DNA of 14,972 nucleotides from the sequence record MK054219.1. One strand, given 5' to 3'. This document shows positions 1,364 through 14,199 of this stretch, piece after piece. How positions within the stretch are numbered: the first letter of the stretch is position 1; each line of letters opens with the position of its first letter. The notes beneath the pieces were generated by a model. It was not told the origin of the DNA. It did no database searches and saw only the letters and a list, made by a program, of their open reading frames with translations. Both the position numbers and the translations under genes were made by a program.

Positions 1364-1804
1364 TCAGTTCACCAACTTTTTCATGATTTTTGCAATAAGT
1401 TCATCAAACTCCTTAATTCTAGCCGGAGGAAGAACTATCGCATTATTCCTCTGAATATCTTTGTTCCTAACCTTAACCTCATTCCATAGTTCATTTAATT
1501 TGTTGATTAAATCGGACAACTCTATAGTAACATTAACCTTAGCCTCAGCCTTTGGCTTATTCTCATTATAATTTATATTAATGTTAATTGATGCGGGTGT
1601 TATGTTATCTCTAATCAACTCTATGTTTAACTCTTTAGCCACTTTTTCAAAGTTCTCTTTATCATCTGAAAGGCTAAATATTAGTGACTCTAAGGCTAGC
1701 TTAACTATCCTCTTCTTTCTGGCATCTAGTCTAAGGTACTTTTCCTTCGCTAATGCATTTATCCTAAACGCCAAGAGTGATGTTACCCTTATCTCATCTG
1801 CCAT
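1364..1804 (-). CDS. Hypothetical 146-aa protein, possible RHH-like N-terminus and coiled-coil C-terminus
   Basis: GAGGTGA SD upstream of ATG; strand-helix-helix pattern [29 protein letters not shown]; amphipathic [17 protein letters not shown]. Confidence 0.75.
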
Positions 1805-1837
1805 TATTTCTCACCTCTGAAACTTTTACTAAAACTA

Positions 1838-2008
1838 CTGGGTAAGCAAAACCTTACTTTTACCCACTGACTGAAAGAGTATAGGAGTATAGTTAGTTTG
1901 TTAATTAGTGTTTGTTTGTTTGACGTTTGTTTAACAGTTTTTTCTGAATGGGTATAGGGGGGGTATAGTTTGTTTTTAGTGGGTAAATTTATGTTACTAT
2001 TTACCCAG
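1838..2008. repeat. Structured repeat region: two TGGGTAA-N14-TTACCCA dyads enclosing four G(A/G)GTATAG copies and TTTG repeats; candidate replication origin
   Basis: Dyads at 1839-1866 and 1980-2007 (both 28 bp); GAGTATAG at 1877 and 1885; GGGTATAG at 1950 and 1961; only 3 C on the plus strand in 1872-1996. Confidence 0.75.
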
Positions 2009-2026
2009 CCAATTTTTTGCATATGC

Positions 2027-2461
2027 TCACCCAAAATTTATTAAATTCAAAATCAGTTTTGTTAGTAGTTTCCCTTTTTCAGTTAGCTTATAGTAAGTTC
2101 TAGGGTCTGGGCTTATATGATAGCTCTGCACTAATCCAAACTCTTCCAGTTCATTCAGATACCTCTTTACATATTTGCCGTTTGTTCTCAATAATTCTTT
2201 AAATTTATTTACATGAAGTCCTTTATCTGTCCTATATAATATTAATAATATCTTTAACTGTTTATCCTCTTTATTATATAAATTATATAGGGATAATAGG
2301 ACTTCTATTAAACTCTTAGCCTTTGGCCTTGATTTTATTGCCTCTTCTTCTAACTCTTCTTCTTGGTCTTCCTTTACAACTTCTTCCTCATCCTCAACTA
2401 TTTCCTCTTTGTCTTGAATAATTTCTTCTTCCTCTTCAATTAGCTCTTCCCGGGGTTCCAA
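2027..2461 (-). CDS. Winged-helix (MarR-like) DNA-binding protein with a highly acidic N-terminal tail, ~144 aa; start revised to TTG 2461
   Basis: C-terminal KRYLNELEEFGLVQ...YYKLTEKGKLL wHTH signature; GGTGG SD before TTG 2461 and a TATA box at ~2495-2502. The 65 extra N-terminal codons in the ORF track overlap a promoter and an opposite-strand gene. Confidence 0.75.
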   Translation of the reverse strand: MEPREELIEEEEEIIQDKEEIVEDEEEVVKEDQEEELEEEAIKSRPKAKSLIEVLLSLYNLYNKEDKQLKILLILYRTDKGLHVNKFKELLRTNGKYVKRYLNELEEFGLVQSYHISPDPRTYYKLTEKGKLLTKLILNLINFG

Positions 2462-2477
2462 ACACACCCACCAATTA

Positions 2478-2516
2478 TACATATGTACAGAAAAGTTTAA
2501 AAGCTTTCTGTACATA
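2478..2516. promoter_or_regulatory. Bidirectional promoter: central TTTAAA flanked by a 12-bp inverted repeat operator
   Basis: TATGTACAGAAA (2482-2493), spacer AGTTTAAAAGC, TTTCTGTACATA (2505-2516); divergent starts at 2461 (-) and 2535 (+). Confidence 0.75.
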
Positions 2517-2534
2517 CACAAGTATGTGGGAAAA

Positions 2535-2693
2535 ATGGAATTTGAGCCTAAACCTAGACTGATGATAACCTTAAGTAAAGATACGTATGTTTTTTTGAAA
2601 AAATATTCTGAAGAGACTCGTAAACCAATTTCACATATAATTGAGGAACTAGTCAAAGAATATTTAATGAAGAAAGAGGTTGTAAAAGAATGA
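2535..2693 (+). CDS. 52-aa ribbon-helix-helix (CopG/F55-like) repressor (not in ORF track)
   Basis: MEFEPKPRLMITLSKDTYVFLKKYSEETRKPISHIIEELVKEYLMKKEVVKE: beta strand RLMITL, helix A, turn, helix B ISHIIEELVKEYL. Confidence 0.85.
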   Translation: MEFEPKPRLMITLSKDTYVFLKKYSEETRKPISHIIEELVKEYLMKKEVVKE

Positions 2694-2720
2694 TATCTAT
2701 GAATAGAATAAGGTGATTAA

Positions 2721-3002
2721 ATGAAAAGTACACCCTTCTTTTACCCAGAGGCAATAGTCTTAGCACATATATATGATAATGAAGGGATTGCGACTTACGA
2801 CCTCTATAAGAAAGTTAGTACGGATTTTCCTATGTCTTCGGCCACATTTTATGGTGCTAAGAAATTCTTAATACAAGAAGGCTTTATAGAGGAAAGACAA
2901 GAAAAGGGCGAAAAGAAACTTTACTTAACGGAAAAGGGGCGTTTATTTGCCATCTCACTTAAGCCCGGAATTGAAACGTATAAAAAGATTAAGAAAGAGT
3001 GA
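2721..3002 (+). CDS. f93: F93-family winged-helix transcription regulator, 93 aa
   Basis: MKSTPFFYPEAIVLA...EGIATYDLYKKV...LYLTEKG is near-identical to SSV1 F93; AGGTGA SD at 2711-2716. Confidence 0.93.
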   Translation: MKSTPFFYPEAIVLAHIYDNEGIATYDLYKKVSTDFPMSSATFYGAKKFLIQEGFIEERQEKGEKKLYLTEKGRLFAISLKPGIETYKKIKKE

Positions 3003-3005
3003 AAA

Positions 3006-3260
3006 TTATTTTTTCTTATTTTGTTCTATTTGCTTCATAAGGGCTTTGTAAGCGTTTTTAATAGCGGTTTCATTTAATGTACCATCTTCATTAAAAATGT
3101 CCTCGGCTTTGATTAGACCTAATTCATGTAGAACTACCGCATATGATAACAACACCGCAAAACTCCATGATACGGCCCCTTTCTTTAATGTGGTAAGGAT
3201 TTTATCTTGGAAGCTCTCTTTATTTTCCTTCTTTTCCTCCTTGCTCCCGAAAAAATTCAC
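3006..3260 (-). CDS. Hypothetical 84-aa protein
   Basis: GTG start overlapping the end of the upstream RHH gene; charged termini and a short hydrophobic core; no family recognised. Confidence 0.6.
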   Translation of the reverse strand: MNFFGSKEEKKENKESFQDKILTTLKKGAVSWSFAVLLSYAVVLHELGLIKAEDIFNEDGTLNETAIKNAYKALMKQIEQNKKK

Positions 3261-3417
3261 TATATTTTTCCTTTAATAGCTTTGCTCCTTCATCTATTAA
3301 TTCGCCTATAGATTTTCCAGTCCTTATCTTTAGTTCATTTAATATCATATAAGTTTCTTCCTCAATCGCTATGTTAAGCCTATACTTTACCCCTTTTTTA
3401 GTTTTTTCGATTACCAT
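3220..3417 (-). CDS. 65-aa ribbon-helix-helix protein, first gene of the leftward early operon
   Basis: YRLNIAIEEETYMILNELKIRTGKSIGELIDEG is an RHH pattern including the G-x-S turn; TATA box (TTTAAA 3441-3446) is 29 nt upstream of ATG. Confidence 0.8.
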   Translation of the reverse strand: MVIEKTKKGVKYRLNIAIEEETYMILNELKIRTGKSIGELIDEGAKLLKEKYSEFFREQGGKEGK

Positions 3418-3515
3418 ATCTGTACATATGTGTTGTCCCTTTTAAATATAATGTTTCTGCATTACTGTGTTTCTGTACAGAAAAATTTATATACCCACTG
3501 TACATATGTACAGAT
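3418..3515. promoter_or_regulatory. Divergent early promoters (T5/T6-like) carrying TGTACA operators
   Basis: Leftward TATA 3441-3446; rightward TTTATATA 3486-3493. ATCTGTACATATGT (3418-3431), palindrome TTTCTGTACAGAAA (3470-3483) and palindrome CTGTACATATGTACAG (3498-3513). Confidence 0.8.
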
Positions 3516-3530
3516 TAGAGGTTCCCCAAA

Positions 3531-3821
3531 ATGCAAGACCAAGAAGAAAGGGAAAACCTCGTAAAACAAAGTTCAGTTTTTTTACTTCTCACCACGGGTA
3601 GTAAAAAGTACGGAACATATCTACATGTCAAAATTGAGATAAATGAAGACGAAAAGATAATAAAAGAAATCTATGTCGACGATATCGGAATAGAGAATGA
3701 ATTAAGGAAGCTAAAAAGGTTATATGAAGTGTATGGCTTTGCTATGTCTGATGAAACACAGGAGGCAATAAGAAAAGAAGTATTGATAGAAATAGCGAAG
3801 ATTCTGCATTTGTTCCTGTGA
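3531..3821 (+). CDS. a100: A100-family protein, 96 aa
   Basis: SVFLLLT.G.K.YG.YLH.KIE..EDEK..KEIY.D....[13 protein letters not shown] matches SSV1 A100. Confidence 0.88.
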
Positions 3822-3826
3822 GGGCG

Positions 3827-3994
3827 ATGAAAATGACTGATATTGAATTTTACTTAGAACAGTTAGCATATATTAAACAACAATTAGATGATCTATTAAG
3901 CAACGCACCTTGCGATAAAGAGCTAATTGAATCATTAGAGGAATTGAAAGAAACTATAGAGCATGCAATTGAATATTGTGAGTGTGGTGATTGA
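3827..3994 (+). CDS. 55-aa acidic helical protein (not in ORF track)
   Basis: MKMTDIEFYLEQLAYIKQQLDDLLSNAPCDKELIESLEELKETIEHAIEYCECGD; GAGGG SD upstream; exactly fills the gap between a100 and c80. Confidence 0.7.
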   Translation: MKMTDIEFYLEQLAYIKQQLDDLLSNAPCDKELIESLEELKETIEHAIEYCECGD

Positions 3995-3995
3995 G

Positions 3996-4241
3996 ATGAA
4001 GGCTAGGGTTGAGTATATCAGGTTGCCGAGACCCTCCTATGCAAAAACTTATAGAAAGATGGAAGTAACGAAGAGGAATGATGGCACAATAGAATTAACG
4101 TTAGAGGATACAATGCAAGTAATATCGTTTAAACTACCGCCTGAGTTGAACGCAAAACTGGAATCTGCTTCAATAAGACAAGGGAAAAGTAAGAGCGAAA
4201 TAATCAGAGAAGCGTTAGCGAGGTACTTGGAAAATGTTTAG
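3996..4241 (+). CDS. c80: C80-family RHH (CopG-like) regulator, 81 aa; start revised to ATG 3996
   Basis: MKARVEYI.LPR...MQVISFKLPP.LNAKLE......KSKSEIIR.ALARY matches SSV1 C80; GGTGA SD at 3986-3990. Confidence 0.9.
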   Translation: MKARVEYIRLPRPSYAKTYRKMEVTKRNDGTIELTLEDTMQVISFKLPPELNAKLESASIRQGKSKSEIIREALARYLENV

Positions 4242-5705: not shown

Positions 5706-6066
5706 AACGCACCTGAGGAGTAACCATAAGGGGATTACGATTCACGTGACTTTGGAAGAACTGGAACGCTATCATTCTCTGACGCCGGAACAGAAAAGAA
5801 TAATTAGGGCTATTGTTAAAGCGTTAATCCATAACCCCCAGTTGTTAGATGAAAGCGGTTATCTCTATAAGTTACTTACAAGTAAAGCAGTATCGCCTTA
5901 CGTTTGTCCCCTTTGCTTAATGCCATTTTCTTCATCAGTTAGTCTGAAGCAACACATCCGTTATACGGAACACGCAAAGACTTGTCCCATATGCAAAAAG
6001 GAGTTTAGAAACACTGATTCAACCCTAGACCATGTTTGCAAAAAACATAATATCTGCGTTAGTTAG
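5689..6066 (+). CDS. b129: B129-family double C2H2 zinc-finger DNA-binding protein, 125 aa; start revised to ATG 5689
   Basis: VCPLCLMPFSSSVSLKQHIRYTEH and CPICKKEF..TDS.LDHVCKKHNICVS match SSV1 B129. Confidence 0.93.
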   Translation: MESGSKTHLRSNHKGITIHVTLEELERYHSLTPEQKRIIRAIVKALIHNPQLLDESGYLYKLLTSKAVSPYVCPLCLMPFSSSVSLKQHIRYTEHAKTCPICKKEFRNTDSTLDHVCKKHNICVS

Positions 6067-14043: not shown

Positions 14044-14199
14044 AAATATTTCACGTCTTTTTACGTCCTATTTAGCCTATTAAATGTACAAACTAATTTT
14101 TAGTGGTCACTGTATAAAGTGACCAAATAACGTTTTTGTAGTCGGGAATCCCGACGGCATAAAATTTTGTAAGAAATTGTAAAAATCAAAATTCAAAGC
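14044..14199. other. Convergent intergenic region with two inverted repeats and T/A tracts
   Basis: TGGTCACT-GTATAA-AGTGACCA (14104-14125) and GTCGGGA-A-TCCCGAC (14141-14155). Confidence 0.6.

Follow-up and report, generated by a model that had tools for sequence, protein, structure and literature searches.

MK054219.1 is the complete circular genome (14,972 bases) of Sulfolobus spindle-shaped virus (SSV) M.06.0.8v2.SSV, an Alphafusellovirus integrated in S. islandicus from Mutnovsky, Kamchatka (PMC6452263). We analyzed this whole stretch, here called the window, and describe a short palindromic sequence, TGTACA, that recurs in two control regions among its early genes. On the left of the first control region lies a gene for a winged-helix protein with an acidic N-terminus (2027 to 2467, minus strand; Pfam HxlR/HTH matches), which is the first gene of a leftward T5-type transcript. 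On the right lies the gene for RHH52, a ribbon-helix-helix (RHH) protein of 52 amino acids from ATG 2535 (2535 to 2693, plus strand; Pfam RHH_3) or 55 amino acids from GTG 2526 (2526 to 2693), deposited in GenBank as the hypothetical protein AZG03496.1. An F93-type winged-helix gene (2721 to 3002, plus strand; PF22194, 2.5e-28) is co-transcribed with it. The second control region separates two divergent units. RHH65 (3220 to 3417, minus strand; Pfam RHH_1), by its sequence an RHH protein of the E51 family, is the first gene of a T5'-like transcript divergent from T6, and the second gene of that unit encodes 84 amino acids from GTG 3260 with a hydrophobic middle (3006 to 3260, minus strand; the GenBank call is 3006 to 3155). 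The T6-type operon begins at 3531 on the plus strand with an A100-type (DUF5517) gene (3531 to 3821; PF17639, 2.3e-33), followed by genes for a C80-like RHH protein and a zinc-finger protein.

The word CTGTACA was found at 2484 (minus strand), 2508 (plus), 3420 (plus), 3473/3474 (a palindrome, read on both strands), 3498 (plus) and 3507 (minus). These are exactly the six positions listed in a sequence-only reading of this DNA, and all of them cluster in the two control regions, with none in the remaining 14.8 kb. The 7 strand-hits compare with 1.42 expected, and 7 were reached in 0 of 200 shuffles. Bare TGTACA occurs elsewhere in only 2 copies (10604 and 14085), which is chance level. The same reading had left to a genome-wide count whether the motif might be equally frequent in coding DNA; it is not, as 7 of 7 occurrences are intergenic (hypergeometric p = 5.5e-10; 5377 7-mer words tested; 714 nucleotides of intergenic DNA). 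That scan took every word, and the motif was not chosen beforehand. CTGTACA shared the top rank for non-coding-enriched 7-mers with TTATAAA, the TATA-box word of the late "core" promoters, and TATA boxes and CTGTACA are therefore the sole two strong non-coding signals in MK054219.

We grouped the sites into five boxes. In the first control region, a repeat finder identified a 35-bp near-palindrome (2482 to 2516, both strands) consisting of box A, a shared core with a TFB-recognition element (BRE) on each side of a TATA box, and box B, which together form a bidirectional promoter. Box A is ATGTACAG on the plus strand (2483 to 2490), and box B is its mirror image, the same sequence on the minus strand (2508 to 2515). 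The 12-bp inverted repeat that the sequence-only reading had described around one shared TATA box is present, with TATGTACAGAAA (2482 to 2493) pairing with TTTCTGTACATA (2505 to 2516), and it extends to 17-nucleotide arms of 88% complementarity with a 1-nucleotide centre, around one TTTAAAA box. In the second control region, box C is ATCTGTACATATGT (3418 to 3431, both strands), which forms a perfect 14-nucleotide inverted repeat with 3502 to 3515; box D is the 14-bp palindrome TTTCTGTACAGAAA (3470 to 3483, both strands); and box E is the perfect 16-bp palindrome CTGTACATATGTACAG (3498 to 3513, both strands), which holds two TGTACA cores spaced 8 bp. The core spacing is 25 bp for both box pairs A-B and D-E1, and the 33-nucleotide promoter unit at 2484 to 2516 is 79% identical to the T6 unit at 3474 to 3506.

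A search for the core CAGAAA-N(1-3)-TTTAWAWA returned three promoters in the window: P52, which serves RHH52 and F93 (core TGTACAGAAAAGTTTAAAAGCTTTCTGTACATA, plus strand), T6 (core TGTACAGAAAAATTTATATACCCACTGTACATATGTACAG, plus strand) and T5 of the winged-helix gene (core TGTACAGAAAGCTTTTAAACTTTTCTGTACATATGTA, minus strand). Common to all three is CAG-AAA-N2-TATA-(4-5 nucleotides)-CTGTACATA. One TATA box serves both P52 and T5 (2496 to 2503, TTTAAAAG on the plus strand; 2495 to 2502, TTTTAAAC on the minus strand), and two BRE-like CAGAAA elements in mirror orientation flank it. The T5'-like promoter of RHH65 has the same octamer as P52 for its TATA box, TTTAAAAG at 3446 to 3439 on the minus strand, followed by ACATATGTACAGATATG. 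The TATA box of T6, TTTATATA (3486 to 3493, plus strand), aligns with box A of SSV1 T6 (5753 to 5760) and lies within the core CAGAAAAATTTATATAC, which is conserved across fuselloviruses. Conservation of the T6 TATA/BRE core has been described for 20 fuselloviruses, T5 and T6 are strong early promoters, and within the BRE, TFB prefers a G 6 nucleotides and an A 3 nucleotides before the TATA start (PMC11065993). The final G of TGTACAG stands 6 nucleotides before the TATA start in T6, P52 and T5 (G 3480 in the case of box D).

Start sites in MK054219 were inferred by a spacing rule taken from SSV1 T6, in which the mapped start (5783, the A of AGAGGG, preceded by T) lies 30 nucleotides after the start of box A (5753). 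The rule puts the predicted T6 start at 3516/3517, the T5' start at about 3417, the P52 start at about 2526 and the T5 start at about 2472. At T5', the predicted start is the A of the RHH65 ATG itself, and the RHH65 mRNA would then be leaderless; the predicted P52 start coincides with the in-frame GTG 2526, and a GTG start would likewise give a leaderless mRNA. Relative to these starts, TGTACA cores lie at about -43 to -38 and -18 to -13 on T6, P52 and T5, with further cores at about -10 to -4 on T6 and T5'. Box A thus stands at about -43 to -38 of the RHH52 promoter and at about -18 to -13 of the leftward T5, box C covers the predicted start site and the start codon of RHH65, box D is BRE-proximal on T6, and box E lies between the T6 TATA box and the predicted start at 3516/3517. 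Alignment to SSV1 T6 bore out the earlier proposal that palindromes overlie the BRE and predicted starts of both major early promoters.

The start of the winged-helix gene is probably GTG 2467 or TTG 2461 instead of the GenBank ATG 2515. By the SSV1 spacing rule, ATG 2515 and ATG 2482 are unlikely starts because they lie on the TATA box or too near to it. Two GenBank coding sequences, AZG03497.1 (2027 to 2515) and AZG03501.1 (3398 to 3505), span TATA boxes and operator boxes and are probably annotation errors; AZG03501.1, of 35 amino acids and entirely within the T5'/T6 intergenic region, is probably spurious.

RHH52 matched Pfam RHH_3 with 23.0 bits against a cut-off of 21.6 (7.9e-5). Its AlphaFold 2 model (predicted local distance difference test, pLDDT, of 86) is extended over residues 1 to 14 and has helices at 15 to 28 and 32 to 50, which is the strand-helix-helix layout. 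With a profile score above the cut-off and this layout, RHH52 belongs to the ribbon-helix-helix (CopG/Arc/MetJ) group. The sequence-only reading had called it an unannotated RHH gene; the RHH part holds, but the gene is annotated in GenBank and was missing only from the open reading frame list available to that reading. RHH52 is 41% identical to SSV1 E51 over 34 amino acids, and its best matches among solved structures, both weak, were SvtR (2KEL) and AvtR (4HV0), with E-values of 0.03 to 0.05. A word-indexed protein search found RHH52 itself alone, and an exhaustive search of 1.84 billion representative proteins gave three weak matches, making it nearly an orphan; the sole match with retrievable context (P0005) is on a 1.2-kb metagenome contig and is uninformative.

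RHH65 matched Pfam RHH_1 with 22.0 bits against a cut-off of 20.5 (1.6e-4), and its identity to SSV1 E51, an annotated RHH protein, is 55% by tblastn and 51% in alignment A1. The AlphaFold 2 single-sequence monomer of RHH65 (pLDDT 83) shows residues 2 to 33 as one helix and does not reproduce the N-terminal strand. The Pfam scan gave no match to RH3_dom for either protein, and judged by sequence both are relatives of the E51 family. They are 100% identical in the five genomes that have the boxes and absent from every other phage record. A protein search with RHH65 found one 42-amino-acid fragment, on a Logan contig (SRR15299608, L026, 1614 bp) that carries the block at 98.7% identity over window positions 1802 to 3380. 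This contig diverges abruptly within RHH65, which reflects either a contig end or a rearrangement.

The TGTACA block is present in five Mutnovsky genomes (MK054219, SSV13, SSV15, SSV17 and M.03.0.42). Two close relatives, MK054210 and the IMG/VR provirus L002, have the same T6 core (CAGAAAAATTTATATACCC) and leader (AGAGGTTCCCCAAAATG) as the window, and their first T6 gene, the A100-type gene outside the exchanged block, is 100% identical to that of the window. The flanks have 97% DNA identity, and over 2449 to 3474 there is no similarity. In these relatives, GATTGATAGA-type direct repeats occupy both T6 slots, with the same substitution at T5, and the genes between the winged-helix gene and T6 (RHH73 with an RH3 domain, ORF73 and RHH62) are unrelated to those of the window. 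For the 84-amino-acid frame, the Pfam scan gave no family match and BLASTP found no similarity to the L002 frame at the same position. The winged-helix protein at 2027 to 2467 is 62% identical to its L002 homologue and 58% identical to its SSV4 homologue, and the recognition-helix stretch TNGKY.KRYLN is invariant in all three. Regulators and operators have thus been replaced together, as one module, between otherwise near-identical genomes.

The ends of the block were also compared among viruses. SSV15 and SSV17 have the TGTACA block joined to a different first T6 gene, and SSV12 has the first T6 gene of SSV15 joined to an SSV7-type operator and an F110 winged-helix gene. The blocks therefore reassort against both flanks, with the right junction at the T6 leader/ATG. 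The T6 leader AGAGGTTCCCCAAAATG (3517 to 3533 in the window) is identical in all Kamchatka viruses examined, with any operator type or first gene, is also found in L005, L003, L027, L028 and L029, and marks this right recombination junction.

At least six operator types were found among the fuselloviruses examined, 4 of them at Mutnovsky. The GATTGATAGA type occurs in SSV2-6, SSV8, MK054210 and L002, and in SSV10 according to PMC6080066; the ATAGATAGAGT type in SSV1; the SSV7 type in SSV7, SSV12, SSV14 and M.04.0.13; the TACAAAGWTTGTRC type in SSVK1; the GTTTAAAC type in the Yellowstone virus MK054220; and the TGTACA type in the window, SSV13, SSV15, SSV17 and M.03.0.42. Operator type and the F110 winged-helix gene are common to SSV7 from Iceland and to SSV12, SSV14 and M.04.0.13 from Kamchatka, and operator type and regulator block stay paired even between continents. 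Slot repeats beside other regulators were also seen: GTTTAAAC-type boxes next to an F93-like fusion protein (L030, MK054220, 3786 to 3991), GCTATAT(A)GC palindromes with the F110 winged-helix gene (L022, SSV7; L027, SSV12) and TACAAAGWTTGTRC repeats with an E81 winged-helix gene (SSVK1, L003, 9320 to 9400). The TTGTAC motif of SSVK1 had no clear genome-wide enrichment. The repeats of SSV1 and SSV10 have been remarked on (PMC6080066); in the literature we found no description of the TGTACA set or of slot swapping.

The best-known repeats in these slots are those of SSV1. There, "direct repeat 1" is annotated on both sides of T6 box A, and its second copy (5763 to 5786) covers the mapped start at 5783. 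These direct repeats are the sites of F55, with the consensus ATAGATAGAGT, and occur in the T5, T6, Tind and Tlys promoters; F55 binds at T5, T6, Tind and its own promoter and represses there, as reviewed from the F55/Tlys repressor work of Fusco et al. 2013 and 2015 (PMC9608457, PMC5569661). Boxes D and E align to both SSV1 T6 repeat slots, box E taking the position of the second copy of direct repeat 1. One short sequence recurs, as in the F55 network, at several early promoters (here T6, T5', T5 and P52, and nowhere else in the window), with its sites on both sides of the TATA box and over the BRE and predicted start. The F55 gene (L004, 5510 to 5677, minus strand) adjoins T6 and is divergently transcribed, and RHH65 is placed alike.

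Taken together, these data suggest that a small repressor, encoded by the virus in the same exchangeable block (about 2461 to 3530), uses the (A/C)TGTACAG boxes as its operators. We assign this reading a probability of roughly two in three. One RHH dimer would read one palindromic box. Occupied boxes at -43 to -38 (sharing the BRE guanine), -18 to -13 and -10 to -4 would block binding of TFB and the TATA-binding protein (TBP) and recruitment of RNA polymerase, and this block would act on four promoters at once, namely T6, the T5'-like promoter, P52 rightward and T5 leftward. Since boxes lie on the promoters of both RHH genes, both candidate repressor genes would be autoregulated. P52 and T5 are probably also rivals for one pre-initiation complex, because they have a common TATA box flanked by two BREs. 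The sequence-only reading had one repressor silencing four promoters including its own; boxes do lie on four promoters, those of both candidate RHH genes included; the binder would most likely be one of the two RHH proteins, and repression is what we infer.

The geometry favours an RHH protein as the reader of the boxes, because 6 of 6 sites hold the 6-bp palindrome complete, as would suit the binding of a single dimer to each box. RHH52 is our leading candidate, at a little under even odds; it has the most symmetric box sandwich at its own promoter, its putative reading strand (R-M-T) is distinct, and this near-orphan protein has the viral repressors SvtR and AvtR as its nearest, although weak, solved relatives by sequence. 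RHH65, which has the F55-like position beside T6, is the more doubtful candidate, and the remainder of our estimate would go to both RHH proteins or to another protein. Comparison between genomes speaks against the C80-like RHH protein as the binder, as its L002 counterpart matches it at 79 of 81 residues although the operators of L002 are of another kind. SSV15 (L015, MK054207) has an extra 74-amino-acid RH3-domain gene of the E73 family (3373 to 3597) between RHH52 and F93, and this protein matches Pfam RH3_dom. The comparison likewise speaks against an RH3 protein as the box-specific binder, as the SSV15 copy shares the KKKTTLAFD strand with RHH73, yet SSV15 has no GATAGA sites. The rule that the gene divergent from T6 encodes the binder fits F55 and was also set aside, undermined by the SSV15 RH3 protein without GATAGA sites and by the non-specific binding of E73.

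Several observations weigh against this interpretation. The region 2100 to 3533 is 100% identical in SSV13 and M.03.0.42 and has two differences in SSV17, and SSV15 differs from the window over this region only outside both control regions. Because the control regions are identical in 5 of 5 carriers, they offer no independent evolutionary test of the boxes, and phylogenetic footprinting is ruled out. In the BRE-proximal boxes A, B and D, the CAG is at the same time part of the conserved core of the promoter (in MK054210, GAACAGAAA), which makes these boxes in part a reflection of the promoter consensus. The promoter-architecture pattern TGTACAGAAAARTTTAWAWNNNNNCTGTACA had 0 matches in the metagenome, genome and viral (IMG/VR) collections. 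Neither RHH protein resembled F55 in the comparisons made: RHH52 against F55 gave E = 1.4 in pairwise BLASTP, and RHH65 is 25% identical to F55 in alignment A1 with no conserved column. The reading strand of RHH65, RLNIAI (R-N-A), is near that of E51, RLNISI (R-N-S), yet SSV1 lacks such boxes, and E73/RH3 has been found to bind SSV-RH DNA only non-specifically (PMC5569661). For RHH62 of the relatives, homology to F55 was likewise not significant.

The boxes could instead be activator sites for timed activation of the early promoters. Cores at -43 to -38, upstream of the BRE, are compatible with archaeal activators, and the strength of T5 and T6 as early promoters would suit such a role. However, every promoter has a box between TATA and start, T6 and T5' have one within about 10 nucleotides upstream of the start, all of which are occlusion positions, and F55 sites at equivalent positions repress (PMC9608457, PMC5569661). 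We consider activation improbable, at perhaps one chance in ten.

The host factor Sta1 acts at SSV1 early promoters, and this counts for a scenario in which the boxes are a host regulon signal that the virus has borrowed, read by a host transcription factor. RadA also acts at these promoters (PMC9608457). If the binder came from the host, viruses of a single host species at a single site would not be expected to differ in operator type in step with their regulator block, as they do here, and the promoter-context pattern had 0 matches in the genome collection. Host control of this kind is therefore quite improbable in our view.

A third possibility is that a dimer of a winged-helix protein, either F93 or the protein at 2027 to 2467, binds the palindromes as CTGT-N8-ACAG half-sites in the manner of LexA. 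The half-sites of box E, a perfect 16-bp palindrome, are spaced by one helical turn, F93 belongs to the transcript of a box-flanked promoter, and the T6-adjacent regulator in SSVK1, SSV7 and SSV12 is a winged-helix protein. However, box E is the only one of the 6 sites with both half-sites, whereas the TGTACA core is complete in all of them. F93 is an unlikely box-specific binder, being 84% identical in SSV1 and 88% identical in MK054220, neither of which has TGTACA in its regulatory regions, and the comparison speaks against the acidic winged-helix protein because its TNGKY.KRYLN stretch is the same in genomes with GATAGA-type operators. A winged-helix reader is accordingly very unlikely.

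Least probable of all, with little weight left, is that the boxes are replication-origin or recombination elements: an origin of SSV1 was once proposed in the Tind region (PMC9608457), the cumulative GC skew has its minimum at 2500 to 4000 and the block ends coincide with both box clusters, but the skew minimum also matches the switch in gene orientation at divergent T5/T6, the boxes keep fixed distances to TATA and start on four promoters in a layout mirroring that of F55, and no AT-rich unwinding tract or iteron array exists beyond the promoters. The skew minimum itself is compatible with a nearby replication origin and is not evidence for one.

We propose, tentatively and at odds of perhaps one in three, that fuselloviruses carry interchangeable immunity-type blocks, in which a conserved T5/T6 core (CAGAAA-N-TTTAWAWA … AGAGG-leader) is kept and the operator slots on both sides of TATA are swapped with adjacent small regulators among co-circulating viruses; the operator types would then define regulatory incompatibility or superinfection groups. 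The TGTACA block would then be a recently spread type, because it is near-identical in five genomes with diverging flanks. Operator types would, if this is true, decide which viruses co-reside in, or take over, one cell. The second provirus resident in host strain M.06.0.8, MK054218 (M.06.0.8v1.SSV, L019; 11.7 kb), is without the whole T5/T6 regulator and promoter region, and for that reason is no guide to heteroimmunity. That region is replaced, within positions 200 to 1400, by a 197-amino-acid protein with an internal repeat, N/S/T-rich by eye, and this provirus may depend on a helper virus such as that of MK054219.

Other signals in the window were noted. A convergent intergenic region at 14084 to 14160 contains a lone ATGTACAA, a GGTCAC-N8-GTGACC inverted repeat around TGTATAAA and the perfect palindrome GTCGGGAATCCCGAC; these elements may be terminator or other hairpins and lie outside the box set. 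The words GCGTTA, AACGCTA and TAACGYTA are far commoner than a first-order model predicts (GCGTTA 28 against 6.8 expected, both strands), and words of this type are scattered in coding regions (e.g., at 650, 4096, 5429, 9019, 9247, 9270, 10440, 12581 and 13545). A sigma-70 and terminator scan was set aside as irrelevant to archaeal promoters.

Among fusellovirus regulators, F55 alone has a demonstrated role, and it has been described as unique to SSV1 (PMC9608457). For the early T5 and T6 promoters of other fuselloviruses, the TGTACA locus would be a second, sequence-unrelated operator/regulator set on the same promoter core, and near-isogenic viruses that differ only in the block serve as natural controls. 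It makes testable which operator is recognised by which RHH protein, whether immunity groups of the lambdoid type exist among archaeal viruses, and whether a single TATA box with two BREs acts as a toggle between divergent transcripts.

The locus can be compared with several known systems. Box E, CTGTACATATGTACAG, matches the gammaproteobacterial LexA SOS box, CTGT-N8-ACAG, letter for letter. In IMG/VR, the exact 16-mer was found in nine contigs (L006-L014) of 50 to 59% GC that share no protein with the window and are taken to be bacterial phages with LexA boxes; L007 has two copies 57 bp apart. A LexA system was rejected for the window, as only box E fits and the Pfam scan gave no LexA-like match among its proteins; to our knowledge, Sulfolobales lack LexA, and the resemblance is coincidental. 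The E. coli MetJ protein binds as RHH dimers on tandem 8-bp palindromic met boxes. The likeness here would be an 8-bp near-palindromic box for each dimer, and the 8-bp spacing of the box E cores would allow cooperation between dimers; it is a geometric analogy only, with no homology and no sign of a corepressor.

Among archaeal viruses, SvtR of SIRV1 and AvtR of AFV6, the closest structures to RHH52 by sequence, are RHH repressors that regulate their own genes and have imperfect inverted repeats as binding sites (PMC5569661). They differ in belonging to other virus families and in having other operators, and their main sites are far from promoters. With respect to SSV1 E51, the E51-F93 gene order of that virus has its counterpart here in RHH52-F93, and both RHH proteins are related to E51; however, E51 has no known operator and SSV1 has no boxes. 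Lambdoid immunity regions are similar in that near-identical flanks surround unrelated regulator/operator blocks in co-circulating viruses. They differ in that the machinery here is the archaeal TBP/TFB, the regulators are RHH or winged-helix proteins instead of CI/Cro, and the blocks are known from sequence comparison.

The closest parallel is SSV1 F55. In both, a small gene beside T6 encodes an RHH protein (RHH65 being one by its sequence), repeats flank TATA and cover the BRE and start of T5 and T6 as well as the promoter of the known or candidate repressor gene itself, and the prediction is that a single protein closes several early promoters together. In contrast, the operator here is a 6- to 8-bp palindrome and that of SSV1 is an 11-nucleotide tandem direct repeat, ATAGATAGAGT; the F55-type 11-nucleotide operator, sought as ATAGATAG, occurs 0 times in the window and 10 times in SSV1. 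MK054219 also has no Tind/B49 unit, and has two candidate RHH genes and a divergent promoter pair with a shared TATA box. The sequence-only reading proposed an analogous switch with a different operator; the same promoter slots, the four promoters and the travel of the boxes with the regulator block agree with that proposal, but neither RHH protein is detectably an F55 homologue. The term lysogeny switch may overstate temporal or carrier-state control, which we call possible because ultraviolet induction is reported as unique to SSV1 among fuselloviruses (PMC6080066). Since operator and protein both differ, the TGTACA set lies outside the F55 system; it would work like that system and is not a member of it.

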